A stretch of 45,407 nt of DNA from Trichosphaerium sp. ATCC 40318 (Eukaryota; Protista; Tubulinea), in assembly GCA_038496445.1 (NCBI GenBank), contig JALMLS010000464.1, forward strand, positions 1-45,407. Direction: 5' to 3'. Positions 6,526 through 44,393 of this stretch are shown one piece after another. Made by a program: the position numbers and the translations under genes. The notes beneath the pieces are model-generated. The model did not search any database. It worked only from the letters and a program-made list of their open reading frames with translations, and was not told where the DNA came from. Every line of letters begins with the position of its first letter. Position 1 is the stretch's first letter.

Positions 6526-7685
6526 ATGCATTTTACATCTGTACTGGTGTTATTGGCCTTAATTATATCTATTTCTTGTCGCGAAATATCTCCTGGATAT
6601 ATTTATGGTGTTGCTTCACCAACAGGTCCTGAAAATGTTGAATTATTTTATACAGACTTAGAGCTTAACAATGGTAAAATTACTCTTACGACCTTGTTTC
6701 ATACTCATATATTACAGCTCCTACTCCTTTGGGCGTGACTGCTACGTTTGATACTCCAGACACACAATTTCCAATCATAAGTAAGCCAATTTTTTGATGT
6801 GCTGTTTTTACAGGCTGATGACACTTTCTAGTACCTTCATTAGATGGCTCAATGATTCTCATGTCGAAGTCAGAAACCGATGGCACACGAAAAGTAATAG
6901 TTAAATCAATTGACAACACCTTAATATGCACTGGCGAATTCCCAGAATTTGTTGTTGCTGGTCAATTTATTGATGAAACAACAATCATTGCTTTGTCTTC
7001 TACATTTACAACAGTGCAAACATACAAACTTGATATAACAAATACAAACAACTGCGTATCTAGAATATATTCATGTGCATTTAGGAACAGTTTTGGTGTT
7101 GATTTTCTCGGGTGTACGTTTGTTACCAATATTTTCGTTCTTCTTTTTTTCTTAATAGTATTGCTAACTTTTTCGCCCATAGTGGTAGTTGATGGTGAAA
7201 CTACAACATTGGCTACATCTGAACGAGCATTTACTTTAATTCGTACTATTGATACATCAGCTTTTTTTGTTCCAGGACCTTGTACTATTGAGAGTACATC
7301 GTTTAATTTTGTTACTTCTATTTATGGTACTTATGTACTAACAAAGCTTGATGATACTAGAAATATTGGTATCAAAATAGTATCACAACCACCACGAATG
7401 TCAATAGCAATTGATAAAACAACAGGCACTTATCTTCTCTTCAATCGTTTATTGTTTATTATTTTTGGGCTTACATGATTTGTAGGCACTCAAACACCTT
7501 ATGGTACATTTCCATTGACCCTTGGTTTGCCTACGTTCTATCCTGGTTTCATAGCTACATGTGTATCAAGGTTACAAAGAAAAACTATCCACTTGTGATT
7601 CCTCGCTTACCTTGTTTTTAGCAAACGATCAGTAATGGCATTGGCATCATTAACTGAAGAGAGAATAGCACTGTTAACTCGTTAA
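6526..7685 (+). CDS. Secreted protein of unknown function, copy B (signal peptide, beta-rich, Cys-containing; 6 exons)
   Basis: Signal peptide MHFTSVLVLLALIISISC. Five short introns restore one frame ending SKRSVMALASLTEERIALLTR*. Intron 7426-7485 has a GC donor. Paralogous to 31313-32485 and 43231-44393. Confidence 0.85.
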
Positions 7686-8230
7686 ATACTACGATCATTT
7701 AGTCAATTACGCAAATTCTTTGACGTTCAATAAAAGTATTTTGTTCTTAAAGTGCAACCTAAAGTTAAAGAACTACTTATCCAATCGGTTGGAAAGACCT
7801 GGCGCTGGTCACAACTTTGGTATAAACGCTGTTAATCGTATACTGAGATATCTGCAGCCCCAAGTTGCAGTAACGTGACTTATAGTAGTTTCACTATAGT
7901 CTAAACTACAAGATGGAACTGTAAGAAATAAGAAGCACCACGTGGTCAGATAATAGCATTTCAAGGGTTGTAATTGTTGTTTTCGTATTAAGGGAAAAAA
8001 ACGTGCAAGGAGTGTATGGTTGGCATCACAAGTTAAACGAGCTTGGTTATATTTCATCCACAAATATTATGCTTTTTTGAGGTTCCCATTACCAGCCCAC
8101 CCTTTCTGCTCATTGATTGATCAATCCGTATCAGGTTTAAGTATACTTAAGTCATGAGTGGTAAGTTGATTGATTTACTTCAACCTTTTACCGTACAGCA
8201 CCGCAACACTACTTGTGCATAGTTATAATA

Positions 8231-9443
8231 ATGTCAAAAAAACGCTTAGTAACCGTAACTCAAAGGTACATACACTAAAATAAAATTATCTGTTTCGTTT
8301 GTCTATTTTGTTGTTCTAATATCAAAAAGGAGACAACCAGGCATTCTAGAACTACCTACAGAGATATTAGCTCTAATTTTGAAGCAAACAACAAAAGCAA
8401 GATTTGCGGCTTGTCAATCTTGTCATCATTTTGCATCAATCATTCACGACATCATTGGATATGAAAGTGTTGTTATTTCGACCATCGCACAAGCAAAAGC
8501 ACTCTTAAAACATGCCAGCACTCTTAAGCAAACAAAGATCAATATTGTTAGTTACTCCTCTGATATTGTCAAAGAATTTGCTGGTGTTCATACGATAAAC
8601 CTTTTTAACTGTGATATCACTGATGACAGTATTAAAGCACTATCAGGTGTTCATACTATTACCCTTCAAAGTGATCGCATTACAGATGAGGATATCAAAG
8701 CACTTGCAGGAGTACATACAATTGCTCTTAGTTGTTGTGACAGTGTTACAGATGAAGGAATCAAAGCGCTTGCTGGTGTTCATACTATAAACCTTAGAGA
8801 ATGCTTTGAAATAACAGACGAAGGTGTTAAAGCACTGGCCGGTGTTCATACAATTAATCTTGGATGGTGTATGGGTATTACAGACGAGGGCATCAAACCA
8901 CTTGCTGGTGTTCATACTATATGCCTTAAAAGCTGTGAACTTATAACAGACGAAAGTCTCAAAGTGCTGTCAGGTGTTCATACCATAGACCTTTCTGGGT
9001 GCAAACTTATTACTGATGAGGGTATCAAGGCACTTGCTGGAGTACACAGCATTACCATGAAGGAATGTGACCATGTAACCGATGAAGGTCTCAAAGCAAT
9101 TTCAGGTGTCCACACTCTAGACCTTATGTGTTGCAATATTACAGATGAGGGTATTAGGGCAATTGCTGGCGATGTTCACACGATTAGTATTTATAGGTGT
9201 GAAGGCATCACTGATGAAGGTATTAAAATGCTTTCAGGTGTCCATTCTATTGACCTTGCATGTTGTGACAGGATTACAGATGAGGGCATCAGGGCACTTT
9301 CTGGTGTGCACACCGTTAAGCTTAAATTTATGGAAGGCATCATTGATGGCAAGGAAGCTCTTTCTGGTGTCCATTCCTTATATATTTTTAATGGCAACAT
9401 CCTTTCATCTGAGGGTATCAGGGCACTTTCTGGGCGTTTTTAG
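8231..9443 (+). CDS. F-box / leucine-rich-repeat protein
   Basis: Exon 1 8231-8265, intron 8266-8329, then F-box-like GILELPTEILALILKQ...CQSCHHFASII and ~13 LRRs of consensus GVHTIxLxxCxxITDEGIKALx. Confidence 0.9.
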
Positions 9444-10561
9444 ATGTATTAGATACTGTAGCGGCACTACAAACAAAGCTGAAGACTAAGTGGTATTGCA
9501 CTCTCTATTTCCAACCACTCTGACACTACAGCTTCTATCTATCCACTATCTCATCTGACGTTGACTATTCTACAACCAACAGTGCCATCTAGTACAATAT
9601 CAAACCTGTAATGTGCTATTCTTCAATAAAGTTTATGTTTGGGTAAATTGATCCTGCAATTTTCTTAGTACATCTTGCAAGATGTGCAATTTATTTTAAT
9701 ACTAGGCATATGTAAGTAGGGGATCTAGAGCACGCAAATACATTGATGAGTAGTTTATATTTGCTCATTAAGCTCGAACATTGTTGTATGCATTAAAGCA
9801 ACAATATCTTTCAGATATTGCAACAACTTGTTCTTTTGTTGGACAAAAGAACATCCTCAAAAATACGTGTGTCAGTGACGCAAAGACAAAACAACGTTTA
9901 GGGTAAAGATGACAGAATTCTAAGGCTTAGGCCCTACAAGACCTCTTTATTCAACAAGTTAAATGCGTGCAGTGCCAGCTAGTTTTGCCATGTTACATGT
10001 AGACTTTGATAATAAATTTGTGGCACAATACATAGGGAAAGTAGCTAAAAGAACAAAATTCTAACGCTTGAGAACACCTCCCTGTTTTGCTCAATCACAA
10101 GTTGTTAACAAGAGCTCAGTGAAAACACGTGCAAAAACAACTATGAATTTAAAATGTACGAGAACATTGTTTCAATGCTTTCTACAAGATGACGTAGTAA
10201 TTGAGGTATCTCAGTACCCACTCTTCTCAATCGTAGATTTGCTTCTTTTTCAAAAAGAACAAGATATCTCACATACAGCCAAGGATATCTCAGGAAAAGT
10301 AAAATACAAGAGTAAGCGTACAGCAAGCCAACAAATGTATTAAAATTTCTAGAAAAGCTCCTTATTATACACTGGTTAATAGACGCTCAAACTCTTATTG
10401 ACGCTATTTAATCTTGCTACAAGACACTAAGAAATGTTGTTATTGATGCTAGCATTTTACTTGAAGCTCTATCTCGTTGCGCACAACTAAAATAGGTCAA
10501 TCCATTTTGTATTGCAGTATTGCCCTGTACGTTTCCAGAGATACTGTGTTATTTACTTTAG

Positions 10562-10845
10562 GCAACAAGCTGACCCAAATGAAGTATGCACTAACACATG
10601 CGCTCAGACATTAGCACCTTGTTTACAAGGCGCAAGAAATGGTGATGAAAGAGAACGTTGTTTCGATGTCTACGAAAACTGTCACGTAAATTGTCACCTG
10701 GAACAACCGAACCTCCTACTGTTGAAGATCATTGCTTCGAGTTTGCCCAACAGCATTTACAAATTACAACGATCGCGGAGACAACATATCGATTGCCTTC
10801 ACTCTTATTCAACGTGTTTTGACACTGAATGCTATGTGAGCTCTA
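10562..10845 (+). other. Cys-rich coding-like segment, possibly a degenerate exon
   Basis: After a TTTAG acceptor: QQADPNEVCTNTCAQTLAPCLQG...CFDVYENCHVNC...CLHSYSTCFDTEC. No complete gene model could be built. Confidence 0.3.
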
Positions 10846-12099
10846 ATAAAACCACATCCATCACTTTCATCACATTCATTGTCTTTTTCTCTTCCCGTTG
10901 TGTTTGGTGTAAAGATTGTACCAAACAGCATTTCAACAGGTCAAACAATTTTTGCGTATAACACAATTAGCTTAGAGCAAGTGTATTGGTTTCTATTATG
11001 GACCTGGAATATTACGATGTTATCATATTCAGCAGACAAATTACAAGACCATCCGGTATATGTCTAAAGCACGTGTTGGAGTAAGTGCTGTTGGTGCTAT
11101 TGTTGGAGCTGCTGTAAGTGCTAGTATTTTTTTCCATGTAGCATTACAACAAAACCATTGGTACTAAGCATTTACTAAGCATTCCTTAGCAGTAGCACTG
11201 CAAAAAGCTACGTTGAATTAAAAAACAACTCACCACACGATCGATACGGATATTCGTACACTCGATGTTGAAAATGTGGATGCTAACCACAGACGGCATC
11301 CATAGTATCAACACCATAAGTTTCGTGACAGATGTCCAAGATCTCAGATAAAATCATGGATAAAGGTCATCTGCCACGTACTTCATGGACATGTACTTTG
11401 CCTTAGCTGCGGTCATAAACAAGTGACAAAGCGCTATATTAGCGCCTATATCTACTATTGCATCTGTTAAAGTATCAGAACCCTCATTTATCACAATGGT
11501 TATAAACTTGTGGAAAACGCTGCTATTTTGGGAATTTTTTCGGAATAAGTTATAAGGTCACCTTGTAAATAAAGGTAATGCTTATGACTACCAGTAGAAG
11601 CCCTTAATAACGTCTACTAACACTTAAAGACAATTCATGCACGCTGTACCAACCTACAAACTAGCGAGAGCCAGTATGACTGAAAAAAAAAAAAGTGGAT
11701 TTGCACAGAGTGTTTGTACTTTAGGCAATTTTTTCTGGCACAACAAGCAACTGAAGTGTTCTCCGTTATATGGGTAGGGATCACATTTCATGCACTTGCA
11801 TTTTGCAATTACTCAATATTGTATTGAAACCGCTGAGAGTCAGTTGAAACTCTACAACCAAATGTTGATTTTGGATGTTTTTTTTTTGGATTATTTTCAG
11901 AATAGTGTTGAAGACGTCATAACTCATAACAGTAAAACTTTATCGAGTAAAACGAACTCTGAGCACTTCCTAATAGCTTATAAATACCCTCGGATATGCT
12001 CGGATCACGCCTAGGTTGTAACTATAGCCGGTAGTGTTCCTATCATTTAAATGAATTTGGAATGGGAAAAAAAAAGTAATTACTGTTATTACAAGAACT

Positions 12100-12172
12100 G
12101 GGCGCGTGGTGTAATTGGTATCACGGTCGCTTTGCATGCGACAGGTACCGGGATCGAAGCCCGGCGTGTCCA
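12100..12172 (+). tRNA. tRNA-Ala (anticodon TGC)
   Basis: 73-nt cloverleaf: acceptor GGGCGCG/CGTGTCC with G3:U70, anticodon arm GTCGC-TTTGCAT-GCGAC, T arm CCGGG-ATCGAAG-CCCGG, discriminator A, T-runs downstream. Confidence 0.95.
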
Positions 12173-13552
12173 CTCAGCTTTTGCTTGCAGCGTTGTTTTT
12201 TAGCTTAGGAACGTTGTTGTGAACAGTTTTGGGTTTGAAGTTTTTTTTTTGAAATGAAATTTTTTAATTTTCTACACTTTTTCTGTGCTTAGTTAAACTA
12301 CCCACCATCACTCGCTATGCGCATTTAAACGCTATAGTGGCATTATATTGCTGCTATGTTACTGTTTAGTATTTTTACTTATTTAAACCACACTCTACGC
12401 TTCTAATACTCTTATTACACGCGTATAGATCGCATCTAGCATATTTGCGCAAAGTTTGAACTGTTCTACCTTTAAAAAGCTTACACGTTGTGACCAATAG
12501 TGAAAATACTATTGAAACAACACTCAAGTGTTGTTTTACAAACTTTCACTTGGAATTGTTAACGGCAGACAACCACACCTGAAATCTGCAAGTAAAACGT
12601 GAAGTAGTCACCGTTATCTCCAATTGACACTAGCACTCTAGCGGTGCACATATTACAAGGTTCAGTTATTATTACAGCACATTTTCTTGTGGCTATGCAG
12701 TAGCACTTTACTATCTAAGGTGTCGGTTCTATTGCAATGTTGATAGGGAACTGTAGTACTACTCTTTGTCTTATAAGCGGAGCTTCAGTACAATCAATGA
12801 TAGTGCATTTGGAGCACGTGTTTTACATGAGTGGTACTAGTAATATCCCCGTATTTACAAGTTTGGTACTAGCAAAGTGTGATGAAGCAACTAGCATTCA
12901 TAAGTGTGAATCAGTATAAGTACTAGCAAACTGTGGCGGTAACAACTCCCGCATTTTATTATGCATATTGGCGAGTGAGAGAAGCGTTAGTAAAGAACAA
13001 CAGGACTTATAGTAATGTCGAACTGTGCAATAATAATTGCTTACATAACCGATTTCTTATCGCCTGCAATGAGCAACACAATAATTATAAAGTATTGATT
13101 GGTAGACTAGCTTTAGATTACTTACTATGTAGAAACGCAGTCAGTGCCACCTCCATTCAGAGCGTGATGTCAACACATGAAGCACGCCATACCATCAAAA
13201 GGTAGGTACAAGGGACCATCTGGATAGAGTCCTAACTCAACATTGATAAGGATGTTAAGAAATGGTTTTGGACAGTAGCAAGGATGTAATTTTTGTCGTA
13301 TTGTCTCACCATAAAAGCGAGAAGAATATATTCGAATAAGCCAGAAATTTTTTTTCAATACTTATCTATCCGGCTAGTTTGTACAGCCCTGTACATACAT
13401 GAAAAAGTTTCCTGAGACAGCTGTGGTTGTTGTCTGGGTTTAACACAGTGTTATCACTTTTGTTTGATTGTCTAATGACTGATTTGATGTGTTGCAAAAG
13501 TGGTGTAAACACAAAAACAGTTTTTTGCTAAATGTAGTGATAAACTATTCAT

Positions 13553-14749
13553 TCATTCATATGTTGTGTGAGTACCTAACTTGTTAACAGCTTCATATGT
13601 AACACCTACACACCGGCTAACATGAATAGCATGTACACTTGAAAGCGCTTTGACACCTTCATCTGTAATACAAGTACAATGGGAAAGAGTTATGGTATGG
13701 ACACCTGAAAGTGCTTTTAGTCCTTCATCTGTAATGCCTCTACACCATTCTATAGCAATGTTGTGAACACCTGAAAGTGCTTTGAGTCCTTCATCTGTAA
13801 TTCCTCTACAGTGGGAAAGAGTTATGGTATGGACACCTGAAAGTGCTTTGAGTCCTTCATCTGTAATGCCTCTACACCATTCTATAGTAATGTTGTGAAC
13901 ACCTGAAAGTGCTTTGAGTCCTTCATCTGTAATGCTATAACAAGCATCAAGAGTAATAGTATGAACTCCAGAAAGTGCTTTGAGTCCTACGTCTGTAATG
14001 TGTCTACACTCACTGAGTTTGATGGTGTGAACATCTGAAAGTGATTGGATGCCTTTGTCTGTAATGTAGCAACCACAAACAGTTATTGTATGAACACCTG
14101 ATAGCGCTTTGATACCATCATCTGTGATGTTTTCTGAAAGGTGGATAGTATGAACACCAGCAAGTGCCTTTATGCCTTCATCTGTTATACCTTCACAGCA
14201 TCCAAGATCAATAGTATGAACTCCTGCCAGCACTTTAATACCATCATCTGTAACATTACATTCAAACAGGTCTATTGTATGAACACCAGCAAGTGCCTTT
14301 ATGCCTTCATCTGTTATACCTTTACAGCATCTAAGAGCAATTGTATGAACTCCTGCCAGCACTTTAATACTGTCATCTGTAAAACAGTCTAAAAGGTTTA
14401 TCGTATGAACACCAGCAAATTCTTTGACAATATCAGAGGAGTAACTAACAATTGTGATCTTTGTTTGCTTAAGAGTGCTGGAATGTTTTAAGAGTGCTTT
14501 TGCTTGTGCGATGGTCGAAATAACAACACTTTCATATCCGATGATGTCGTGAATGATTGATGCAAAATAATGACAAGATTGACAAGCCGCAAATCTTGAT
14601 TTTGTTGTTTGCTTCAAAATTAGAGCTAATATCTCTGTAGGGAGTTCTAGAATGTCTGGTTCTCTTCTTTTTTTGATATTAGAACAACAAAATAGACAAT
14701 TTTATTGAATATACCTTTGAGTTACGGTTACTAGGCGTTGTTTTGACAT
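13553..14749 (-). CDS. F-box / leucine-rich-repeat protein, inverted paralogue of 8231-9443
   Basis: Same exon 1/intron layout (exon 1 14749-14715, exon 2 from 14666), near-identical F-box region, and an LRR array with internal 132-nt and 129-nt period duplications. Confidence 0.9.
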
Positions 14750-15218
14750 TGTTAACTCCGGGTATGTTGTTTCGTTGGGTACCAAGTGTAATTGATGTTT
14801 AGGAACGGGAGGAATGGGAATGATATTTACACAGGGAAGAATTACAAGGACCGCCTAAACGCATTGGTATTGTGGTTCTTTTTTTTCTTTCATTAATTTG
14901 CTTTTAGGCTGGTATGCTACTTGTGAAAAGCACACTGATATCGACAGAGGCTAGTACAATATCTTAAGCCAGTAACAAGGATTAGTCAAAATAGATAGCA
15001 CAGGCGCACTTGCCTGAAAATACGGAAAATAATAAAATTTACCAATACTGGTGCAGAATACCACGTGACCAAAATATCGGTTAACCTAAAACAGGTAAAT
15101 TTCAAGAAAATCAAGGCCTTGCAAAATAAGGAGTCGTTGAGTTTTTGAAATATCACGTGGCTATGTTAAAATACCATACAAGTGTAAATGACGTAAATGA
15201 CCCTGATTTTGATTTTAG

Positions 15219-15480
15219 GATATTTGTAATTGCATCAAGACCTGACACTTGTGGCAACAGAACAGAAACAACGAACGTTGGCATGGTGCTTGGTATAACT
15301 TTTGGTGTTCTTTTATTGGTATGTAGTTATCTTGTTTTAAGCTTAGCTTGATCACTATTTTTGACTTGGCACTAGGTGATCATCGGTCTTATTGCCATCT
15401 TCTTTGTTCCAAAGTTGAGACATGCGATTGTACCATACTCATTACGTAAAAACACACTTAAAGTCACCTCTACTGAAAGT
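15219..15480 (+). pseudogene. C-terminal fragment of a single-pass membrane protein (2 exons)
   Basis: IFVIASRPDTCGNRTETTNVGMVLGITFGVLLL|VIIGLIAIFFVPKLRHAIVPY with a GT-AG intron. No convincing upstream exons. Confidence 0.4.
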
Positions 15481-16117
15481 AAATTGTTCTTTTCAATAAA
15501 CGGTAGATACCCTACTTCACTCTCACGTAGGTTGTTGAGAGGTAGTTATTAACATTGCGTTTTACACCGGTTCCTATTTTTAGCTCGTGTTAGGCTATTA
15601 GATGAAATTGTTGGATCAAATACTTTACCAATGTCCATACTTACAATTGCTTTAGGAAGGTAGTTTTCGGTTCAAGTTAACGTAAATGCAAACCACAGAA
15701 GCTTGTACAAAATTGGTGTATTTGTTAATCATACGGAGACTACAGGTCCAACAAACTCTCTACTTTACTATACTCCTTTCACTAGACAGTTACACCAGCT
15801 GAAGTGTTCGCTAGCAGAAGTTCACATTCGATTTGTACTTGTAAGCACAAACATGATCTTATCGTGCCTTTGTGGAGAGCAAGAACTACAATGCATTCAC
15901 CAAATATTTTTGTGAATATAGTCCTTTTTTCCAGCCTGTACGTTGTGGAAACGCTACATCAGTTTTAACATTTTCGTTGAAGAACAATGTGAAATCTTTG
16001 TGATATTATCCTGTAGATGTGAGGAAATCACTCATAACTGCTCTTTGTGCGTTCAATAGAGCATGTCGGGTCTTAAGAAGCATATAGTCCGTAGAATGAT
16101 GTGTTTCTGACGGAATC

Positions 16118-16231
16118 GGGATCTCCCGGCCTTGGATCCCGGTACCTGTCGCATGCAAATCGCTGCCGTCTAGGGGCGCATTTCCGTCGCTTTGCATGCG
16201 GCAGGTACCGGGATCCAAGGCCGGAGAACCA
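16118..16231. repeat. tRNA-Ala-derived palindromic element 1
   Basis: 34-bp inverted arms 16126-16159 and 16191-16224 with 1 mismatch and a 31-nt spacer. Arms match tRNA-Ala 12131-12164 except GATCGAAGC->GATCCAAGG (plus one A->G in the right arm). Confidence 0.9.
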
Positions 16232-17055: not shown

Positions 17056-17168
17056 TGGATCCCCCGGCCTTGGATCCCGGTGCTATCGCATGCAAGTTGT
17101 ATGCATTTTTCTGTCATTTCAAGCACTTTGCATGCACTTGCACCCAGGATCCAAGGCCAGAGGATCCA
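17056..17168. repeat. tRNA-Ala-derived palindromic element 2 (more diverged)
   Basis: TGGATCCCCCGGCCTTGGATCCCGGTGCTATCGCATGCAA ... TTGCATGCACTTGCACCCAGGATCCAAGGCCAGAGGATCCA. Similar spacer length and the same CATTTC motif position as element 1. Confidence 0.85.
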
Positions 17169-17523: not shown

Positions 17524-17659
17524 GTACCTGTCGCATGCAAAGCGACCGTGATACCAATTACACCACGCGCCCAGTTCTTGTAATAACAGTAATTACTTTT
17601 TTTTTCCCATTCCAAATTCATTTAAATGATAGGAACACTACCGGCTATAGTTACAACCT
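17524..17659 (-). pseudogene. Truncated tRNA-Ala copy (first 49 nt) plus 87 nt of its upstream flank
   Basis: Reverse complement of 12013-12148, apparently identical. It stops at GTAC after the variable loop; T arm and 3' acceptor strand are absent. Confidence 0.9.
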
Positions 17660-17716
17660 GTTTATTTTTTTTTCCTTTATTTCAAATCTTTTCATTGTGT
17701 ACATGTGTACATACAA

Positions 17717-31312: not shown

Positions 31313-32485
31313 TTAACGATGTAGCAGTGCTATGCGTTCTTCATTTAATGACGCCACTGACTTTGCTGACCGTTTACTAAACAAGTTAAATGAGTATCGA
31401 AGATGAATCTTTTTAAAGTCACCTTGATACACACGGAGCTATTAAACCTGGGTAGAATGTTGGAATAGTGATGCTTGGTGATTGAATTGTTCTATATGGT
31501 GTTTGAGTGCCTACAATTCTTGTAAGCCAAATATAATAACCAATATATGATTGAAGAGAACATAAGTACCTGTTGTTTTATCAATTGCTATTGACACTCG
31601 TGGGGTGGCGGTATTAACGTCGATACCAATATTTCTGGTATCATCAAGCCTTGTTAACAAGAAAATACCCCCAACAGTACCTAAAGTATTGACAGATGCC
31701 ATGTCAATAACACATGCTCCTGGAACAAAAAAAGCTGGTGTATCAATAGTATAAAGCACAGTGTCTCCAGAGCTTTGAAAAACAGCCACCATTGTTGTTT
31801 CGCTATCAACTACCACTGTAACCGAAAAAGTAAGCCATATTAAGCGAGAAAAAAAGCAGAAAAAAGAACAAATTGTTGTTCGCCAACGTACTTCCAACAA
31901 ATCCAGGAGGTCTTATTGGTGTTCCGCATGAGTATATTGAAGATACACAGTTATCCGTATTTGTTATGTCAAGTTTATATGTTGCCACTGTGAATGTCGA
32001 GCTAAACCAAACAATGAATGTTGTATCATCAATAAATTGACCGGCAGCAACAAACTCTGGGAATTCGCCAGTACATATTAATGTGTTGTCAATTGATTTA
32101 ACTATTACTTTAAATCCACTGGCATCTATCATTGTCAAAAGAATCATCGAGCCATCAAATGAAGGTACTAAAAAAGTGTCATCAGCCTGTAAAAACAGCA
32201 TATTTGGTATAAACAACTTTGGCTTACTTATGACTGGAAATTGTTCTATTTGAAGCGTAAACGTAGCAGTGACGCCCAGAGAAGTAGGTTCTGCAAATGG
32301 TTAAGTACGAAACAAAGGTGTAAAGGTATTTTACCATTATTAAACTCTAAGTCTGTATAAAATACTTCAACATTTTCAGGATCAGTTAGTGATGAAGCCA
32401 CACCATAAACATATCCAGGAGGTATTTGGCGACAAGAAATAGCTATAATTAAGGCCAATAACCCCAATATGGACGTAAAATGCAT
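31313..32485 (-). CDS. Secreted protein of unknown function, copy C
   Basis: MHFTSILGLLALIIAISC. Same six-exon structure as copy B, all GT-AG, intact frame ending ERIALLHR*. Confidence 0.85.
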
Positions 32486-33022
32486 GTGATCAAAGGTATT
32501 TATTTAATAAGAGACGCTGCGATGTAACAAGAGATGTGTGATGTGATTGGCCTTCAAAACAATTGTTTGCTTAAGTGAACAAAACGCACTTGATTTCACG
32601 AAGCAGATTCATCGCAAAAAACAAAAAGTCATGGCGTAATATTTGCGCCAATTTTATATAGTGATAAGTTAGATGTCACAGCATACTTATAGTTTAAATT
32701 TTGTCCAATGAAATCTCGTGTTTGGTTAAAAACCACGAACTGACAAGAATGATCCGGCTACACAGATCGAACTGTAACGAGAGGATTCGAGATACCTATT
32801 CAATGAATGTATCAGAGGTATCACGTGCTCCGAGACACCGTGTCTATATCGTTATCTAGCGATTGCGAATTGTAAAAATACAACGTCAATAGTGTTTGGG
32901 TTTTCCTATTGTTTTCACGACTACTTCTTGATGCAGATGAAAGAAAACGAATTTCAATTGAAAAAACAGTAATGTTTATGACTCAACTCTCGTATTACAC
33001 AGTCCACTACAGTTTTATACAA

Positions 33023-34750
33023 CTACCCCATACAAGCCATGATGGCCATTGCACTTAAAGATACAGTTAAGATTGCTGCAATGTACTGATAGAACAATAA
33101 CGCAGACACTCCATTTGACATATTTCCATGAATAGTTGCCATTACAACAACAGTGACGGATGTAGGTGCACCTAACCATAACGTTACAAGAACTTACTGA
33201 ACAGTTCATATACTACTTACATCCTTCTATCATAAGAACAAGCAACATTACTTTATCATTATCGAATAACCCAATTACTTTATGAGCCAAGAAAAACACT
33301 ATACCAAATGTAAACAAAGCAGGTATAAGCACCATCTTGATAAAACAAATTGCTGAAAGCCACTTAAACTTTATATCAGTTTTTGGTGGCCCCTATAAAT
33401 CGTAAGTCGAGTTATAAGCTGCTGTTGTGACATAGAAAAAAAAAAGAAAAAAAGACTTACACGTGCTATTTTACTTCCTAGAATTATCATAGCAAGTGGC
33501 ACTAGGCAGTTACCAATCAGTGTACATGCTGTAGTAATAAAACTCAAAGGCGGAGTGCCACTGAAGTATTTACTTTCATGAAACAAAGCACGGACTTGTG
33601 GTACGCAGCCAATAAAAATAGCTAAAACAGCCTTAGCAACGGAACCTGTAAACAACGTAGTTCTGCGTACCTAATACACCCACACAAATTGGAGGAGTTA
33701 ACATGCCGTAACCTAGCTTTGAGTATCTTTTAATACGTTGCCAGTTGTTTTCTTGTATTTCTTCAACAACAACATCTTCAGCATCTTCAACAACATCTTC
33801 TATTCCAGAGTCTTCAATTAGCATCTCTGTTTCTGTATCGCTTGTGGTTTGTATCATATTGTCAAATGAATTGCTTGATTCTTCCTTCTAAAAAAAGTTT
33901 GTCTTAGTGCTTGTTGAGAAACTAAAGATTTTACATCCTTATTCTTTGCCAAGAGATTAAAACCAATCAACCATGTCGGAAATTGCATGAATATAGCAAT
34001 CAACAGTACATACGATGTGCTACGGTTCTATATTTAATAAGTAAAGCCTTTCAATAAAAAAATAGGATGTACTAAGAGTATCTCGGTGGATTCTTTGGCA
34101 TCGGATTGAAAAAGCTATTGGATGATTAGAAAAACATGTGTCTATTTACGCTCATTACGCACTTGTGGAGAATTTTTTATGAGAGAGGTTGTATAAGCAA
34201 GAGCAAAACTTGCGGTACTTGAGAGTCCAAGAACACACATCAAGTAATACTTAAAGGAAGTCGATGTGCGGAAAATTCTGAGTTTAAAAGGTATAAGGAT
34301 AAGTTTCTTTGATATTCTCACGCACTTTCCTATCGTCCAGCCAATGAAGAGACCAAGTGCAATGTATAAATAAAGAAATACGAATGTAGGCCAGTATTTA
34401 ACAAGTTGAGAAAGTGTTACAACGTCAGACACTTAATGTTTTAAGTCATAACCTTTTTAGACAATTTTGTATTGTTTTTTAGCTTTTTGCGAGAAAAAAA
34501 GGCGGTGGCGGACCTGTTGCGAATAGCAGTGATGGCATAATAAGTGATTTTATAAGGTTTGAAATACTCTGTACTGTATTGTCACTTAAGACGCCTATAC
34601 GAGTCATCGTAATACCTTAAATAAGTGAGTTTACGCGTTTGTTTGTTCGTTGGCAAAAACCTGTTTATTTCACTTACCAGCGGCAACTAAGCAACATATT
34701 TCACCTGTTGCTGCTAAAGCCGAAAACGTGATAACCTTTAACGTAGCCAT
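33023..34750 (-). CDS. Auxin efflux carrier (AEC/PILS-like) membrane transporter
   Basis: Two hydrophobic halves separated by an acidic loop. Motifs LIMPSLLF, LTPPI, LIGNCLVPLAMIILGSKI and VLMIEGCAPTS...VSALLFYQY are typical of PILS/AEC proteins. Confidence 0.85.
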
Positions 34751-34801
34751 AGCCAATCTGGAAGTGTTATTAAGTTCGTTACTTTTTACGACTAAAAAGC
34801 C

Positions 34802-34815
34802 AAGTCACGTGACTT
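34802..34815. promoter_or_regulatory. 14-bp perfect palindrome AAGTCACGTGACTT (E-box core) ~50 nt upstream of the transporter ATG
   Basis: Seen directly. It lies between the divergently oriented transporter and F-box/MORN genes. Confidence 0.45.
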
Positions 34816-35128
34816 TGGATGGACAAACCAAAAACAGATTGTCCGAGTTTACAATTACTTTCATTGCATTGAACTGCATGTAGAAGTTAATCTGGATGAG
34901 AATGGAATCGCCATTAATAGTATTCTGTTGCAATCTGTACAACAGATTTTGACATGCAAACCAATTGGTTTGTGTCAAGCATAAACTCAACCTGTAGGCG
35001 TTGTAACTTTTCATATTTCACGTTTAATGTAATAAAAAAATAAATAGAACACGTGTATTACTCTTCAGTGACTAGGAGTTGGCTGATTTTTAGTCTTATA
35101 AAATCAAAATACTCATAGACCTGCTTTA

Positions 35129-35934
35129 ATGGCGTCAAAACGAAAGGTAGCTGGCTAAAACGTACTATGTAGCATAAACTAACCGGCGACATCCTCGTAG
35201 ATTAATACCTCAGAGTTGGCTGATTACTGCCTATTAACCCTCCCCGTTGAGCTGCACCTAGATATTATCGATTTAGACGGAGAAGTATTCAATGGCCTCT
35301 TTTATCCAAACACATGGCTATAACTACAAGATTCAATAGCACGTTTGATAAGCATGGTAAATGGAGGAAATATTTTAATTGTCCAATGCGCATTCAACGT
35401 TTCCTAATTGAAGGAGAAGGCAACTTGTGGAATGCTGAGCATAAAAGTCTGGTTAAAATGGAATGTTTTTACATCAATAGTAAGAGACACGGACAAGAGA
35501 AGCGTTGGTATAGGAATGGTAGGATGGAATCCACGTGTTTGTACTCGAACAACATAAAAGTTGGAGAAGAGAAAAGTTGGTACATGAATGGCATCAAAAG
35601 AAGTAGTATTTCTTATAGCAAGGCTACGGCTCCGATTAGTAATTGTACAACAATTCAGAAGCTAGAAGGTGATAAAATAGCTTGGCATGATAATGGCCAA
35701 ATGGCTTACAAGTGTTTTTATGTTGATAACAAACAGCAAGGTGAAGAAAAAAGTTGGTATAAGAATGGTCAAATAAAGCGTCAATGCTTTTATGTAAGTA
35801 CACAACAACAAGTCTTTCCACAAAAACAGGGCGAAGATATATTTTGGAGTGAAGATGGTGAATTAAGAACTATACATTTTTATGATAAAGGTCAATTTAT
35901 ACGTGACAAATCGTATTTAGCGATATCGTTTTGA
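35129..35934 (+). CDS. F-box-like + MORN-variant (YwqK-type) repeat protein, with an apparent -1 frameshift near 35300
   Basis: MASKRK|INTSELADYCLLTLPVELHLDII (intron 35147-35200) is out of frame by one base with ORF 35314..35934, which carries GxEKxWYxNGQ repeats. Confidence 0.7.
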
Positions 35935-36379
35935 CTTAGATAGAAATCATTTCTCATAAGATTCACGCGTTCTTGTTGATCTACAATACCAGATTGGAGG
36001 CAGAATATGTCTCACTCAGCTTTAATCCCTGGATCACATACCCAGAGACCCTTCCCATTTATTAAATTGGAGTTATCTCTTGTACATGTACAACAAATTA
36101 CATATATAAATTGAAGAATTCAATCAGCAACACAAAAACTTTTTGCATCATAATGTGCCATTGTATAGAACTGCTACTTGCTGATGTTGTTTTACGATAC
36201 TACTGTACTTAAACAACTATCTCTCACTTATCAAACGCCGTAAAATACCTATTTATACTGTCAAAAAATGAATGAAAAGCACGTGATTACTAACGTTGTA
36301 AACCACCAACTTCCAAGTGAATGTCTATGCGAGCATTGGTTTAGAACGTTTCGACTTTATAGTTTTCGCTCATTTTAAA

Positions 36380-36580
36380 GGTACCTGAGCAAGTTGAATC
36401 TCTAGGCAAGGCTTATTGTTAGGTATTGGTTGTATGGCTAGCTCCAAAGCTTTTATACTGTCGGGCTTATCCAAGAATGGTATTTTTCCTTTATCGTTCG
36501 GAACCGGAATTGACTTAATCGCTTCGTTGTCAAGTTTCTAGAGTACGTTAATGATAGCCTCATCATCTAGTTTGCTCTTC
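36380..36580 (-). pseudogene. Coding-like exon relic with one in-frame TAG
   Basis: KSKLDDEAIINVL*KLDNEAIKSIPVPNDKGKIPFLDKPDSIKALELAIQPIPNNKPCLEIQLAQ followed by a GTACC donor. Confidence 0.3.
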
Positions 36581-37544
36581 TAACTTATGTAGAGGTTTAT
36601 CTAGAGTCCCTTTAAAACTCATTAAAGAGTTAACAGTCGAGCACAAAAGGAAGTTAAGTACCGGCAAACAAGAACTAAGTCATTGTTAATTTTGATCAAA
36701 AAGCAATTCAATTGATTTCGAGTGTCCATGGCGACGCGCAGTGAAGTGGTGTTTGACCGTCTTCCATAGTAACACTTGTTTCGAATTTGTTTTTAAGAAG
36801 AATTTCCAAGTGATTGTGTTTGCCCTTGATGCAAGCCAAATGCATCATTGTACAGCCTATGAAAAATCCAAAAAAAAGCAATTTCCTTGTATTCGATTAC
36901 TTACCGTATGTACTTGGTATAGTGGTTTTAAGTTGTTTAGTAGCTATAAGAGCTTCTATGGCTGTGGTAGAGTTGCACATTATGCTCATGTGAAGTACCT
37001 TACATGACCAGACAACACCAATACCCCTTTGTAGCTACTGCTTTAATTGTATAGAGCTGCTTAATATCCGAGTACTTAGAGATACATTTTCTATGTAACA
37101 AAAACAAAAGTATCCTCCCTAGGTGAGGACACGGTATTTTTATTTGTTTTCATTCAGATGCACTTCCTAGGTAAGGCCGCTGGTTTTTGTTTTTGAGAAT
37201 TCTTTTTTTTTTTTTTGGGTACCAAGTAAGTTCTATGTTCACCGATACTTTAAGATCACGGAAGCCGCTAATAGATTTGTTACTTTTTTTTTTTTTTTTT
37301 TTTTTTATTGGTTTTATAGACCGACCATTATGTGTCTACTTTCGTCAGCCACTACGAAAGGTTTAAGAGGGTTTTATGTGAGTCGCTTCGGTTAGTCAAA
37401 CCGAAACTAGCTGTGGAGAACTACTTCCATCTGATATCGAGAATATTTTCGTTTCTTTTTATACCATTAAAAACTACACAAAAATAAATTGTGGTATTAA
37501 TAGAAGCTTCTAGAAGGTTAGTTCACTGAAAATTCTATTTTAAA

Positions 37545-37750
37545 TACTCAAATATGGATAATGCACATTTCAAAACGCTCCCAAAGGCCTGTGATAGCTA
37601 TTTACACACGTGGAAACCACATTGGACAAGTTTTGTATCTAAAAGCGTGCAACGAAACGAGAACTTCTTTTTTTAGATACTGTTTCGTAATTACTCAAAT
37701 ATGGATAACGCTCGTTTGGAAAACCACAAACCTTGTACTAGCTATTTTCA
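37545..37750 (+). repeat. Degenerate direct repeat, ~147-nt period
   Basis: TACTCAAATATGGATAA occurs at 37545 and 37692, each followed ~35 nt later by TAGCTATTT. Confidence 0.6.
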
Positions 37751-37836
37751 TGTATTTGGAACTGTTTTGACACTATTTTATAAAAAAATGTGGTGCTAGT
37801 GCAGGAAGAGGTAATCTTGAATCACAAGATCTATCC

Positions 37837-38201
37837 TAGCGCCCTTCCGTTATGAATGAATAATTTGAATATTCAAATACAACCTACATTCACAAATATT
37901 CACGACTAAAAAAATTCATTCATTATTCATGCACACAGTAAACGGCAGAAAATTGTGCAATTTGATGGCTGATTTTGACTGGATTTGTGGGTTTTGGTGT
38001 TCTGTTGACTATTCCGATTCGGTTTTCAAATGCAACTTGTTGAATCTATCCATTAGGAACATTGCTAAGTGCTACAAACCAAAGCTCCTCCACATACTGA
38101 CTCACCAAACGCCCATGAATATTCATGAATGAATATTAATGAATATGGCTTACGGGACAATGAATATGAATATTGCTTGTATTCATAACGGAAGGGCGTT
38201 A
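37837..38201. mobile_element. hAT-type MITE (365 bp, 21-bp TIRs, 8-bp TSD)
   Basis: TIRs TAGCGCCCTTCCGTTATGAAT / ATTCATAACGGAAGGGCGTTA (20/21). TSD ATCTATCC at 37829-37836 and 38202-38209. Clustered subterminal TGAAT/ATTCA motifs. Confidence 0.9.
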
Positions 38202-38509
38202 ATCTATCCTTTCTGCTGTGATGTTTTTAGGCAAATTTTCAGTGTTAGTGACTGCTCATCTCAACACACTGTTTGGTAATAATTGATTTACATTATACTG
38301 TCAGCGAAGAACTCGCTGTCAAGCTATTTGACAAGTACAAATTCCCTTTACCAATATCACGTGACAAAGCTAGTTTTACACATTTCTTATCAACTAACGT
38401 TCTGACCGTGATAACTCTTTGTAGGAGGCTGGGAGCAAATATACAAGTCAGGAGTTTGGTTAAGCTACAGTGAGTTTTTAACAAGTTTGACCATTACACT
38501 CATCAAATA

Positions 38510-39429
38510 ATGTCGATCAAGCAAGAAGAAGCTATGAATCGAGTTACACGTCTTCAAAGTATGCCACCAGAGACGATTACTCATATTTTGAGTTTTTTAG
38601 ACAGGAAACAGCGTATTAGAGCTTGTAGAGTATCTAGTGTATTCAAAGACATCATACGTAACAATCTTGGCTTTAATATCATCAAATTACATGATTCAAC
38701 AGATTGTCGTGTTCTCTTTGAAAGTCCTTTGCTCAAAAACACTAAAATTGTTTGTGAGTATCTAGAACTAGAAGGGAACGACTTGAATTATCTTTGTGGT
38801 GTTCGAACCATTTATTTAAATGGTGCCATATTGACAGATGCAGATATTGTTGGACTAGTAAACAAAGGACAACATTTTAGTCACTGCTCCATTCATACAA
38901 TATACTTGAGTGAAACGTCCATCACAGATGTATCTTTAAAGGCACTCAAAGGTGTACATACAATCGATATTAGACATTGCAAGAATATTACTGTTGAAGG
39001 AATAAAGGCACTAAAAGAAGTTCATAAACTTATCCTCTCTAATCCTCAAGACTCATGGTTGAAGTATCTATGTAATGTCCATACGCTCTTTATTGATAAA
39101 GCTAAATGATGACTGATGAAGGATTCTCATCGTTGATAAATGTGAATACCCTTTCCTTGATTAGGTGTCCGAATATAACAGACTCATGTTTGAAGAACTT
39201 GGTCAACCTGAAGCAGCTTGGTGTTTGTGGGTGTAATGGGATTACAGACTTAGGATTAAAGTACTTGGTCAACCTTGAAATTCTTTACCTTATGTCTAAT
39301 GATATGATCACCAATGAATGTTTTGAGCACTTGAAATCACTTAAACGCCTTGTTATTCTAAGTGGTTGTAAACAGATTACAAAAGAAAAAATTGAAATGC
39401 TAGGTATAACTTTTGTTTCATTTTCTTAA
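38510..39429 (+). CDS. Intronless F-box / LRR protein split by a -1 frameshift at 39104-39109
   Basis: F-box LQSMPPETITHILSFLDRKQRIRACRVS. The LRR register continues across ORFs 38510..39109 and 39106..39429 (VHTLFIDKAK/MMTDEGFSSL). Confidence 0.8.
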
Positions 39430-40003
39430 GGGCACTTTGCCCTTAAGTGTAACTTATTAAACCTTACTGCTACATGCCTTGTACTTGTATGTTAATAAAC
39501 TTACCTTGAATACTAGTACCCTGCTTGACGTATAATTATCAGGGATGATGTTTGATTACAAAACAAAACTAATTGACATAATTGAAACAAACTTTCCCTC
39601 AAATACAAAAGATTTAATGAATCGTCACTTAGCATCACTCATGATCTGTGTTCACCAATAACTGACAGTAACAAATAGACTTTAGTTGCTACAAAATCGA
39701 CTTGGAAGCCAACAACACAAAGAGATACACAAATAACATTCTTATACTATGCAGAAGAGATAATCATCATTGAATATCTTTTTGTGGCCTAGTCAATACG
39801 TGTGTATCTGAAGCTTGTCTACATGGATCTTTCATGCATGGTACATCATCTACTGTAACACTAATTGAGCGTGGTGATTGTGATGTAAACAGTATACACA
39901 TGGTACATGGCAGGTCACATTGTAAACAGTAGCAAAAAATAGGCCATTTCAGTTTTGGTGCAAGATCAGTGTTGGAAGAAAAGGCTTGGAGAAGTATTTA
40001 TTA

Positions 40004-42446
40004 CTATAACTTGGTTAATATGTCTTGCCAGTTATTACAGTATGACCAAGTATTGTCATCGAGAGTTTTCATTTCAAGAGGTACATTGAACTCAAGAACA
40101 TCAGAATCAGAAAAAAAGCTCTTCCATGGGGCTCCTGGAACTCCTAAAACGGCCATAGACTTCCAATATCTGCAATAGTTATCAAAAGATGTGATTGAAG
40201 TTAAAAATCATACGCTGCCATTGAGTGTGAAACGTAGACGTCATCTTGAGAAAAAGTTCCATTGAAGAACAGACTTTGGTGCTGGAATATGTATGCTACT
40301 GTTGTTTTGTTTGTAAGTATACTAGAAGTTTAAAGAGATAATTTACTTACACTCTGAAGCATGTGTAGCGTTAAGGAAGGAGTTTGGTCCTTCAGGGAAC
40401 TTTGTAAAATGATATCTAAAGTAAGAATCTGGCTGAAATTTTGCTATAAACGGAGAAGCTAAGTGTACACCGCACGCAATACCAGAATCTCCAAAAATCT
40501 TAGAAGCGCCCTCCCAATATCCTCTCGCCTTAGAATACGGCACATACCTGTAAAAAAAACATCACGTGAACAAACTTATAAATACAAACATCACAAACCA
40601 TGACTTAACAAGCTCAATAAAGTCAGAAGAATATCCAGCGAAAGATTCAGCGACTATCTTGTTATACATTGCTTCATCAATACCTAAATACGTTAGAGGT
40701 GTTATGTATAATAACAGCAGCAAAGTCGGTCATACCTTCTGCTGGTGTCTTTCCGCTGTTTTGAAACATAAATATGTTTCCTTCATATTCTTGAGTGCCG
40801 ATTATCATAGGGTACTTCCTATACAATCCATCTTGGAGCAAAGACAATGGTTGAGCGGTGATAGTTGTTCCACCAACAGTGGGGTAGTATGATAACTATT
40901 AGCAGTCAGTAAACCATACACTAGTAAACGTGCTCATACGCCAGATTTCTGTGTTTCAGTCATTAGTGTCTTTGCTGGTACTTTTTTCAGGCATCTGAGA
41001 AATCATCAATTATTTAACAATGTAAACATTGACTGTACTCAGTATTAGAGCAATCAAAAAGTTGTAATACACTCTCTGTAATCTTCATACTAGTTTCTTT
41101 TGAGGGAAGTCTCCATGGCCCAGGACTCTCAGCGATTAATGCCCTCAAACAATTATTAGTACAAAAAGAACGATTGATAAAGTACACGTGGTAGAACAGT
41201 CAGAACAAAAGTAACATTGTAATGATAAAATGATAGATGGTCAGTGTAGAATGTGTCAACAACAATCGCTCCTTTGCTACTGCATCACCTAGTAATGAAG
41301 CACCCACTCAACAACCTACAATAGCTCCAGGTGGAGGTATAATAGATGTATTTATCATGGGAAAGTCAGGAACAGTAGGACTCAGTAGGATTTGACGATC
41401 GGATGATTTCAAATACGAGTGATATTGTTGTTGTAATAAATGAAGTATTGCAACTCTTGTGAAGAGTTCGAATTCAAAAAAGGGTGCTCACCGTATAGGT
41501 ACTGTTTGAATTGTAGGTGGTAGGATACTCTGTAGCAACGTGCTCATACCACCTGCTGATTCACCAAATACTGTCAAGGTACTCGGATTACCACCAAACG
41601 CGTGTATATTTTCGTAGACCCATTTAATAGCTAACGCTTGATCTTGTAATCCAACGTTTTCGTGTTGTTTGTTATCTTCATTGTAATAAAATCCGAAAAC
41701 ATCAAGTCGATATCTACAAAAAGAAATTGACTTTTCGGTCACGTGATATTATTTTTTTCGAAGTTTTTTTTCAACATACGATATGGTGACTACAATGGAA
41801 TCTGTTTGAGCAGCGAGTTGTCCACCAGGGTACAAAGACGTGCCTCCATACAGAAAAGAACCACCATAAACTATTAAGGTCAATACACTCTAGACAAGTC
41901 ACTTCACTTCACGCACTGAATAGTAAAACTGGCGTTTCTGAGTGCATTGGCATAGGAGTGAATACATTAAGGTATAGACAATCTTCTGAAGTTTGATCCA
42001 AAGTATACATACTACCACCTTGAACACAAGCCTCCTTGAAACTACACAAAAAAAACTCAGAGAAAAGTTTTTCGATTTTGTTCTCAATGAATGTACTCTT
42101 TGGCGTCAATGATTTTATTCCAATCGTCTACAGGTTGTGGAGCCTGAAAACGCTTATCTCCAATAGGAGGCGTTGCGTATGGTATACCTAGTGAAACAAT
42201 CGTAAGAAAAAGACGTAATGTTACGAGAATGACGCTCTCACCGTGGAAGTAAGTAAACGGTAGCGCCTCAGTTGTATCTAAACCGATTTAGTATCTTACC
42301 AATAATATGGCGTAGAAAGTACTGTAATATCCTTGAACAGGTCCGTTCTTTGTTTGAACTACAGGCGGAGATGATCCAAAATAATTCAGGCACGTGATTG
42401 TTACTAAAAAGTTCAAAAAGAGGATAGCCAACAAGCTTTTTAACAT
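40004..42446 (-). CDS. Secreted type-B carboxylesterase / lipase family protein
   Basis: Signal peptide, VQTKNGPVQG, GIPYATPP, SEDCLYLNVFTP, YGGSF, GLQDQALAIKWVYENIHAFGGNP, nucleophile motif GESAGG, and a His-containing C-terminal segment (ATHASE). Confidence 0.95.
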
Positions 42447-43230
42447 GAGTAGTGTATGGCTGTTGCTATACAAAAAAAGAGTGTTTCCAGTAAAGGCTAT
42501 TGTCAACGTAGTTCTGTGGTATTAAAGACTAAAGATACAAGCATTCATTCGGCCTCAAGATCCACCAGACTCATGTGCCAGGTTGTAGAGTCACCTTGAT
42601 ACGTTAGATTGGACATAGTCAACACAAAGAAGGTGCATATTGGAGAGTCTTGATGGCTCTATCATCCATGAGGGGATTTATTACACTTAAAAAGAATCGT
42701 GTAGCAAATGATAATTGAATAACAAAACAAGAAAGCATGATCACTACTTGTAATTGTTTTGTAAAAGCTTGAAATATTCCACATTTCATATGAATACAAT
42801 TACAGACTTCAATTGGTTAGAAATAACTGAGAGTGTTACGGATATATTGCGGTTGTGATGGTCCAGCTGTTTCTGAAGCTGCAATTTTGACAATTATAAA
42901 AGGCGTACATTTCGTCACATGATCTCCGCACATGACTGAGGTGCGGAGTTATCATTATTTTTTGCACTACAAAGCTACTTACGCTTCAAATGGAGCAAGA
43001 AGGACGAGTGTGAGATGGAAAAGAGTTCGTGGATAACCGTGATTGTAGTATTTTACTACAAACTAATCAACATAATAAACTACAAAAGAAGGCCAAGACA
43101 GGATTGACACAATGAATATAATGCCATAATGTTTGTTCATGATGATCTGCTTCCGTGATATCAAGTGCCTTTTATCACTTAAGCCAAAAACTATTGGTAC
43201 ACTAAACATCACAACGTCTCTTGAGATCAC

Positions 43231-44393
43231 ATGCATTTTACATCCATACTGGCGTTATTGGCCTTAATTATATCTATTTCTTGTCGCCAAATCTCTCCTG
43301 GGTATATTTATGGTGTGGCTTCATCACTAACTGGCCCTGAAAATGTTGAAGTATTTTATACAGACTTAGAGTTTAATAATGGTAAAATACCTTTACACCT
43401 TGTTTCGTACTTAACTATTTGCAGAACCTACTTCTCTCTGGGCGTCACTGCTACGTTTACGCTTCAATCAGAACAATTTCCAGCCATAAGTAAGCCAAAG
43501 TTGTAAAACCAATTATGCTGTTTTACAGGCTGATGATACTTTTTTAGTACCTTCATTTGATGGCTCGATGATTCTTTTGACAATGACAGAAACTAGTGGA
43601 AGATTTAAAGTAATAGTTAAATCAATTGACAACACATTAATATGTACTGGCGAATTCCCAGAGTTTGCTATTGCCGGTCAATTTATTGATGATACAACAT
43701 TCATTGTTTTACTTCCTCCGTCATCCACAGTGGCAACATATAAACTTGACATAACAAATACGAATAATTGTGTATCTCCAATATACTCGTGCGTAATATC
43801 ACCAGTAAGACCTTCTGGTTTTATTGGAAGTACGTTGATAACCATCAATTTTTTCTTCTTTTTTTCTTGCTTAATATGACTTACTGTTTCTGTTACAGTG
43901 GTAGTTGATAGCGAAACAACAATGTTGTCTGTTGCTCAAAGATTTGGGAGTTCTGAAATTCATTCTGTTGATACATCAGCTTTTTTTGTTCCAGGAGCAT
44001 GTGTTATTGATTCGATTGATACTTTGGGTTCTCCAATTGTGGGTACTATCTTGCTGTTAAGGCTTGATGATACAAATGTTGGTATCAACAGTTTTGCTGA
44101 AACCCCACGAATGTCAATAGCAATTGATAAAACAACAGGCACTTATGTTCTCTTCAATCATTTATTGTTTATTATATTTGGCTTACAAGAATTGTAGGCA
44201 CTCAAACACCATATAGAACAGTTCAATCATCAAGCATCACTCTCCAACATTCTACCCAGGTTTCATAGCTCCGTGTGTATCAAGGTGAATTGAAAGAAAG
44301 AAAGAATACTCACTTACCAGTGTTTTTAGTAAACGGTCAGCAAAGGCAGTGGCGTCATTAAATGAGGAACGAATAGCACTGCTACATCGTTAA
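43231..44393 (+). CDS. Secreted protein of unknown function, copy D (extra CT in exon 2; may need intron-1 retention or be a pseudogene)
   Basis: Closest to copy C. GC donor at intron 44139-44197. Ends ERIALLHR*. Confidence 0.75.

Follow-up and report, generated by a model that had tools for sequence, protein, structure and literature searches.

A dispersed gene family in Trichosphaerium encoding putative secreted beta-propellers with one conserved and one variable face

Copies of the family and their gene models

The DNA considered here is a stretch of 45,407 nt from the amoeboid protist Trichosphaerium sp. ATCC 40318 (contig JALMLS010000464.1 of assembly GCA_038496445.1; hereafter, the window), and our subject is a family of genes that it carries in four copies, denoted A to D. 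The window has the composition of eukaryotic DNA, with ≈36% G+C and very short introns of 43–76 nt. A family gene has six exons and encodes ≈295 amino acids with a signal-peptide-like N-terminus. An earlier note on this DNA had reported four paralogues. A tblastn search with the two intact proteins found exactly four copies in the window, dispersed and in both orientations, and together with the alignments placed each of them where the note had put it. However, only copies B and C are intact; D is frameshifted, and A is a truncated and rearranged relic. Copies C and D share 80% amino acid identity, and the other pairs 57–68%.

The gene models were built by aligning the four loci and choosing splice sites that kept the reading frame, which yielded the six exons. 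Copy B (6526–7685, + strand) is intact and encodes 294 residues in exons 6526–6673, 6718–6780, 6832–7113, 7183–7425, 7486–7570 and 7622–7685. RNA contigs could be placed on copies A and B, with run X1 representing a 2023 study and run X3 a 2015 study. All five introns of B were confirmed by spliced contigs from both studies, including intron 4, which is of the GC-AG type in both B and D. The joints lie at 6672/6717, 6780/6832, 7113/7183 and 7568/7620, while the spliced exon 4/5 junction was seen as loose contig ends at 7430 and 7484. For intron 2, the acceptor is not the obvious CAG but a site 19 nt further downstream, which in B is supported by the joint at 6780/6832. Because every junction was confirmed by spliced RNA, B is a real, expressed gene.

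Copy C (31313–32485, − strand) was modeled by projection from B and is intact, with an open 888-nt coding sequence for 295 residues. Its exons are 32485–32335, 32290–32228, 32167–31892, 31815–31570, 31510–31423 and 31376–31313, and its introns are all GT-AG. Intron 4 (7426–7485 in B, 31511–31569 in C and 44139–44197 in D) is the best-conserved intron in all pairs, with 5–14% divergence. If retained, it would extend the reading frame of all three copies by a hydrophobic tail, TYxLFNxxLxIIFGL, before a stop codon is reached. To judge from the sequence, the tail could belong to a membrane- or glycosylphosphatidylinositol-anchored isoform, or could be a mere by-product of T-rich intron sequence. 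No contig retaining intron 4 was seen among the RNA contigs.

Copy D (43231–44393, + strand) is the sister of C and has the same six-exon structure apart from two frame-breaking indels, an insertion of 2 nt in exon 2 (in a TC run near 43431–43442) and a deletion of 1 nt in exon 5 (after 44241), each of which leads to a premature stop. D is an apparent pseudogene, unless both indels are assembly errors. An X1 contig at 7430 connects exon 4 of B to a D-type exon 5. It is probably a k-mer assembly chimera formed through a 39-nt block that B and D have in common, but it does indicate transcription of D or of a copy resembling D.

The locus of copy A (3373–4610) is a composite of a family 3' part, a foreign segment, the start of exon 3 and an inverted fragment of exon 1. 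The 3' part (3373–4177, − strand) comprises exon 3 from KVIVKS onwards (4177–3958), exon 4 (3903–3652), exon 5 (3578–3494) and exon 6 (3436–3373). It has an open frame and canonical splice sites and lacks a 5' end; no in-frame start codon or signal peptide was found for copy A, and RNA depth was zero over 3334–4168 in four runs. The foreign segment (4178–4497, − strand, 320 bp) contains three exons (4497–4462, 4398–4272 and 4213–4178) and two introns, which derive from an expressed gene whose product is a small hydrophobic protein. RNA contigs from X1, X3 and X4 are 100% identical to it, with a joint at 4396/4462 and loose ends at 4178 and 4497. The rest of this gene, searched for as the 5' and 3' transcript continuations in the loose-end sequences, is absent from the window, and a Pfam scan of the segment was empty. 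The segment looks like a recent copy of part of a gene situated elsewhere. Beyond it lie the first ≈40 nt of exon 3 (‘GGSMIL..SSG’, 4501–4541, − strand; tblastn match 4556–4494, minus) and the inverted exon 1 fragment (4542–4609, + strand; tblastn match 4538–4618, plus). Their head-to-head arrangement at 4501–4609 is the signature of an inversion or a hairpin-type rearrangement.

Homology, predicted fold and the two faces

No Pfam family matched at E ≤ 10 when the read-throughs of B and A and the exons of C and D were scanned. A word-indexed search of 5.8 billion proteins with a 208-residue read-through of B gave no match. A profile made from exons 3–4 of all four copies was scored against 1.84 billion cluster representatives and brought up no true homologue; its sole match, P0001, was rejected as spurious, because it is the translation of a tandem repeat, matched in nine stretches and giving nonsensical Pfam hits. 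A profile search of PDB sequences returned nothing but noise at E > 1. The earlier note had not recognized the family, and neither did any of these searches; the best reading of the sequence comparisons is that the family is lineage-specific and a sequence orphan among the databases searched.

A construct of 197 residues, consisting of exon 3 of B, the in-frame intron 3 and exon 4, was folded with AlphaFold2 (AF2) using the paralogue alignment. The resulting partial model has a mean predicted local distance difference test (pLDDT) score of 58.8, rising to 70–80 over exon 3, and a predicted template modeling (pTM) score of 0.58. It is all-beta, with serial four-strand meanders. Structure searches with Foldseek against the PDB, the AlphaFold DB clusters and the ESM Atlas, and with VIA-align against 48,161 chains, returned beta-propellers only, with no individual propeller standing out. 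The language-model features of the protein also resemble those of propeller clusters. The suggestion of a beta scaffold, possibly a propeller, is supported by a low-confidence partial model whose matches in four structure searches are of one kind, and the protein probably folds as a beta-propeller.

Five motifs of the form hydrophobic-x-hydrophobic-Asp can be assigned to strand D of successive blades (FYTDLE, VKSIDN, YKLDIT, YTIDT and IAIDK). Because there are five such motifs, the arrangement suggests five blades, one of which would be shared between the two N-terminal and the two C-terminal strands. Comparison of blade against blade with hhalign gave no significant internal repeats, the best pair being blades 3 and 4 with E = 0.06. 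Copies B, C and D all retain six cysteines, of which one falls at the predicted signal cleavage site; this is consistent with the disulfide-stabilized scaffold that had been proposed. Residues 1–18 (MHFTS, a 12-residue hydrophobic core and small residues) resemble a signal peptide in the same three copies, and by this leader the product would be secreted, as the earlier note had held. Exon 6 encodes a conserved basic tail that starts with a KR pair.

The strands of the AF2 model, taken from its DSSP string, were mapped onto the four-copy alignment; the assignment to faces is topological and depends on a low-confidence model. (In what follows, A–B, B–C, C–D and D–A refer to connections between the strands of a blade, whereas pairs of gene copies are written B/C, C/D and so forth.) The variable segments coincide with the A–B and C–D hairpins of each blade. 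The B–C and D–A connections are conserved non-strand segments with repeated motifs resembling hydrophobic-Asp-x-Thr-Thr. Only 5 of the 46 columns in the A–B and C–D hairpins are invariant (11%), against 28 of 46 (61%) in the B–C and D–A loops (Fisher p = 8 × 10⁻⁷). Mean pairwise identity is 0.25–0.34 for the hairpins, 0.75–0.77 for the loops of the other face and 0.63 for the strands. The A–B and C–D turns of a meander blade are found at the same end of its sheet, opposite the B–C and D–A turns. On this model, therefore, the variable segments lie on one face of the propeller, an outcome that the earlier note had suggested looking for.

Divergence, exchange and turnover of copies

The blocks KVIVKSIDNTLICTGEF, GQFID, TYKLDxTNTxNCVS, IYSC, SIAIDKTTGTQTPY, FYPG and ERIALL, which had been described as near-invariant, do not vary at all among the copies in which the respective region is present. 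Between them, the hairpins differ in sequence and in length, and in-frame indels are restricted to hairpins in the four-copy alignment. The C–D hairpin of blade 3 (31992–32009, − strand, in copy C) provides an example: it reads WFSSTF in C, LLPPSS in D (43709–43726), and SSTFT, shifted by one residue, in B. As the note had stated, all six residues changed between C and D through nine substitutions. Differences between these two copies are clustered beyond chance, with up to 10 in an 18-nt window (shuffle p ≈ 5 × 10⁻⁴), a variance-to-mean ratio of 3.6 in 30-nt bins, and a longest identical coding run of 87 nt (p ≈ 0.004).

The comparison with introns was less clear-cut than had been claimed. 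Intron 4 does differ at only 3 of 59 nt between C and D, and coding loops diverge faster than introns 1, 2 and 4 (2%, 7% and 5%), but not faster than all introns, since introns 3 and 5 stand at 14.5% and ≈47%. (Slippage may drive the evolution of a purine-rich, low-complexity run in intron 5.) Pooled, the introns of this pair differ by 14% per nucleotide and the loops by 20%, which is not far apart. Nor is the framework as a whole free of synonymous change, of which the note had seen none in ≈100 nt: 8 of 162 codons for identical residues differ synonymously between C and D. Synonymous differences at such codons are equally common in the variable and the framework classes in every pair. The loops thus show no greater age than the framework; what they have diverged in addition consists entirely of non-synonymous change, accumulated at close to the neutral rate.

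The flanks of the copies were compared with blastn. A conserved region precedes the start codon at 6397–6525 (+ strand, copy B), 32486–32613 (− strand, copy C) and 43131–43230 (copy D, with a deletion of ≈40 nt), with 88.6% similarity between B and C over 132 nt. No similarity between 3' flanks extends beyond the stop codon. The duplicated unit thus runs from about −130, where the upstream ≈130 nt mark its 5' end, to the stop codon, a length of 1.3 kb. Two motifs of the upstream module, ATCTGCTTCCGTGATATCAAGTGC and TATCACTTAAGC, are candidates for promoter or 5' untranslated region elements.

The history of the copies is largely, though not wholly, that of a single tree. Among 55 informative sites in a four-taxon comparison, 41 back ((A,B),(C,D)), while the two alternatives receive 7 each. 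The 14 conflicting sites, together with other irregularities, hint at exchange between copies, as far as the sequences allow one to judge. Synonymous divergence between C and D is 0.20 in exon 4 and zero in exons 2 and 5, and the 5' module of B and C (the 130 nt upstream with exons 1 and 2) shows roughly half the divergence of the remainder of the gene. We considered an explanation in which gene-conversion tracts, short or long, from diverged paralogues replaced loop segments, homogenized the framework and 5' module, or both, leaving mosaic copies. Besides the observations just given, it would account for the sharp contrast between neighboring introns of the C/D pair (2% in intron 1 and 5% in intron 4, against 14.5% in intron 3 and ≈47% in intron 5). 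However, slippage in the low-complexity run may be another source of the divergence of intron 5, the majority of informative sites agree on one tree, the window contains no donor for the loops of C or D, and synonymous differences are not enriched in the variable class in any pair. We regard such a patchwork as improbable. Homogenization of the framework by gene conversion was rejected as the main cause of the pattern, since the framework carries synonymous differences at the same frequency as the loops do.

The resemblance of the loops to complementarity-determining regions raises the idea of programmed or somatic diversification, by targeted mutagenesis or templated editing within an individual; this look of the loops is its sole source. 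Contigs of B from the two independent RNA studies each show 0–2 differences from the genome. The 2023 contig has one synonymous change; those of 2015 have one synonymous change and an adjacent double change at 7383–7384, which replaces Ser by Arg in the C–D hairpin of blade 5 and is the only codon at which the loops are altered. Nothing in these contigs, which match the genome almost exactly, points to the somatic loop variation that the note had raised as something to look for; contigs hide rare variants, so that this is weak evidence. The substitution spectrum of the loops is an ordinary one in which transitions dominate, and by the same observation mutagenesis that is biased or of the diversity-generating retroelement type was rejected. 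Somatic diversification is hardly to be credited.

Between the family copies lie a 14-3-3 gene, F-box/leucine-rich repeat (LRR) genes and a MORN-repeat gene. The 14-3-3 gene (4929–5791, + strand, between A and B; Pfam E = 5 × 10⁻³³) is divergent, and is expressed and spliced in RNA run X2, with introns at 4984–5033 and 5204–5248. A second X1 contig carries 10 differences, indicating a paralogue or an allele. A homologue search with the 14-3-3 gene gave no match at E ≤ 1 × 10⁻²⁰. The F-box/LRR genes form an inverted pair (8379–9443, + strand, and 13553–14617, − strand) with a further copy at 38510–39109 (+ strand), and the MORN-repeat gene lies at 35314–35934 (+ strand). The region is rich in lineage-expanded repeat-protein genes, interspersed with the family.

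Selection, interpretation and known systems

The ratio of non-synonymous to synonymous divergence (dN/dS, or ω) was estimated in two ways. By the Nei–Gojobori method, whole-gene ω is 0.52–0.85; when codons are split by variability, the variable class gives 0.84–1.59 and the framework 0.17–0.33, a split that is circular. With site classes taken from the independent A/B pair, ω for C/D is 1.49 in variable and 0.56 in conserved columns, the excess over 1 being marginal. Maximum likelihood (ML) under a Goldman–Yang codon model with four taxa gave 0.78–0.92 for the variable class, which was chosen post hoc, and 0.20–0.24 for the framework. For classes defined by structure, ω was 0.97 in the hairpins, 0.39 in the loops of the other face and 0.49 in the strands. 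In likelihood-ratio tests, ω of the hairpins and of the variable class was indistinguishable from 1 (p = 0.16–0.92).

The earlier note had inferred a diversifying repertoire. The ML values for the loops (0.78–0.97) do not exceed 1, which the note itself had named as grounds for abandoning that inference. Values of 1.3–1.5 by Nei–Gojobori occur only in the young C/D pair, of which D is a pseudogene, and are not significant; moreover, half of the copies in the window are defective. Four sequences, one of them a pseudogene, leave room for a minority of positively selected sites, and diversifying selection is unproven.

The reading that we prefer, and hold to be probable if only just, is that of a lineage-restricted family of secreted propellers with one constrained and one unconstrained face, shaped by duplication, decay and occasional exchange. 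The product would be a secreted propeller of ≈277 mature residues, most likely with five blades, with the strands at its N- and C-termini closing the fold and up to three disulfides holding it together. Purifying selection would act on the strands, on the B–C and D–A loops that make up one face, and on the basic C-terminal tail. These elements would probably carry the shared function, perhaps the extracellular binding of a common ligand, for instance a sugar or one bridged by a metal. The A–B and C–D hairpins of the opposite face would tolerate nearly any substitution as well as short in-frame indels, and would drift about neutrally. Neutral drift of the hairpins combined with purifying selection on the scaffold yields the pattern of framework and variable loops, with no need for a special mechanism; the family resembles gene copies diverging in the usual way, and no sign of a hypervariation system was seen. 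The copies themselves would turn over through duplication of the 1.3-kb unit, decay and rearrangement (as in D and A), and some exchange.

Several observations weigh against this reading. The AF2 model is of low confidence and covers only 60% of the protein, and it includes an unreliable helix made of 23 residues that the intron encodes; the assignment of blade 5 and of the loop classes was done partly by hand. In the young C/D pair, loop dN (0.21–0.25) is higher than dS overall (0.125) and higher than the divergence seen in introns 1, 2 and 4 (≈5%), and ω reaches 1.3–1.5 even with the classes defined from A/B. Several loops of this pair have changed well beyond the neutral prediction, with, for example, 9–10 changes in 18 nt, and the branch since the split is the longer one for the intact copy C. 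Finally, the sole non-synonymous difference of B between the 2015 RNA contigs and the assembly is the double change at 7383–7384, in a variable hairpin.

A rival explanation is a diversifying recognition repertoire, in which the hairpin face binds the ligand, and selection for new specificities toward prey, microbes or self/non-self acts on a subset of hairpin codons, where averaging over the loops masks it. The confinement of the variability to one face, the elevated C/D ω in variable classes (including the independently defined one), the extreme local clustering of changes, the restriction of in-frame indels to hairpins and the strain-level double change in B are all consistent with it, and there is a precedent in the positive selection reported for coral tachylectin-2, a five-bladed propeller lectin (PMC2880987). 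Against this stand the ML estimates, which do not rise above 1 in the hairpins or the variable class despite the post hoc choice of the latter, the presence of just two intact copies in the window beside the pseudogene D, and the zero RNA signal of copy A. The conserved, motif-rich face is also the more usual candidate for a binding site. We judge this explanation unlikely.

A bolder version would make the orphan five-bladed propeller a germline-encoded recognition repertoire of an amoeboid protist. Its hairpin face would be diversified by selection, possibly aided by patchwork exchange between numerous scattered paralogues, so that prey or microbes could be discriminated or self be told from non-self; the conserved face and the tail would couple it to a common downstream partner. 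This we consider decidedly unlikely. To our knowledge, little has been established about how amoeboid protists recognize prey, microbes or self and non-self at the molecular level. If the family is as it appears under the reading that we prefer, it adds a sequence-orphan family of secreted beta-propellers to a poorly annotated protist lineage, and offers a clean example of face-specific constraint, with one face frozen while the other varies freely. The significance of the family would grow if the freely varying face proved to be under diversifying selection, as a propeller-based repertoire would be a new solution.

Among known systems, the tachylectin-2 family consists of five-bladed beta-propeller lectins, whose coral homologues are reported to be under positive selection (PMC2880987). 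Like them, the present proteins appear to be small, secreted, single-domain propellers, probably with five blades, that occur in multiple copies, show raised amino acid diversity and plausibly bind something extracellular. Unlike them, they have no match to the Pfam Tachylectin family at E ≤ 10, and positive selection has not been demonstrated. Furthermore, tachylectin-2 is made of five near-identical 47-residue repeats, whereas the blades here are not detectably alike. Tectonins and tachylectin-1 are six-bladed propeller lectins first described from the plasmodial surface of Physarum (PMC2707011, on a human tectonin). Like the probable propellers described here, they occur in an amoebozoan or innate-immunity context, and they are thought to bind surface glycans; however, no tectonin-repeat Pfam match was found here, and the repeat length, motifs and blade count differ.

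The hypervariable WD40 repeats of fungal NLR/HET proteins, such as Podospora het-d and het-e, carry variable positions on the D–A/B–C (‘top’) face, with positive selection demonstrated (PMC11761791, PMC4986451). Both systems concentrate variability on one face of a beta-propeller scaffold, which in the present family is a probable one. The fungal proteins, however, are intracellular, and their near-identical repeats are shuffled by recombination, whereas the blades here are dissimilar; the variable face is the opposite one, A–B/C–D, and ω is close to 1. The top structural matches were generic WD40-like propellers, namely MEP50, Nup43 and Cdc4, which resemble the model in their four-strand meander blades. 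Foldseek gave these matches probabilities of 0.96–1.0 with TM-scores of only 0.3–0.5, and VIA-align a Z-score of ≈7 over ≈80 residues. Unlike these cytosolic or nuclear scaffolds, the proteins of the present family have no WD/GH signature or Pfam WD40 match, and are predicted to be secreted and to bear disulfides.

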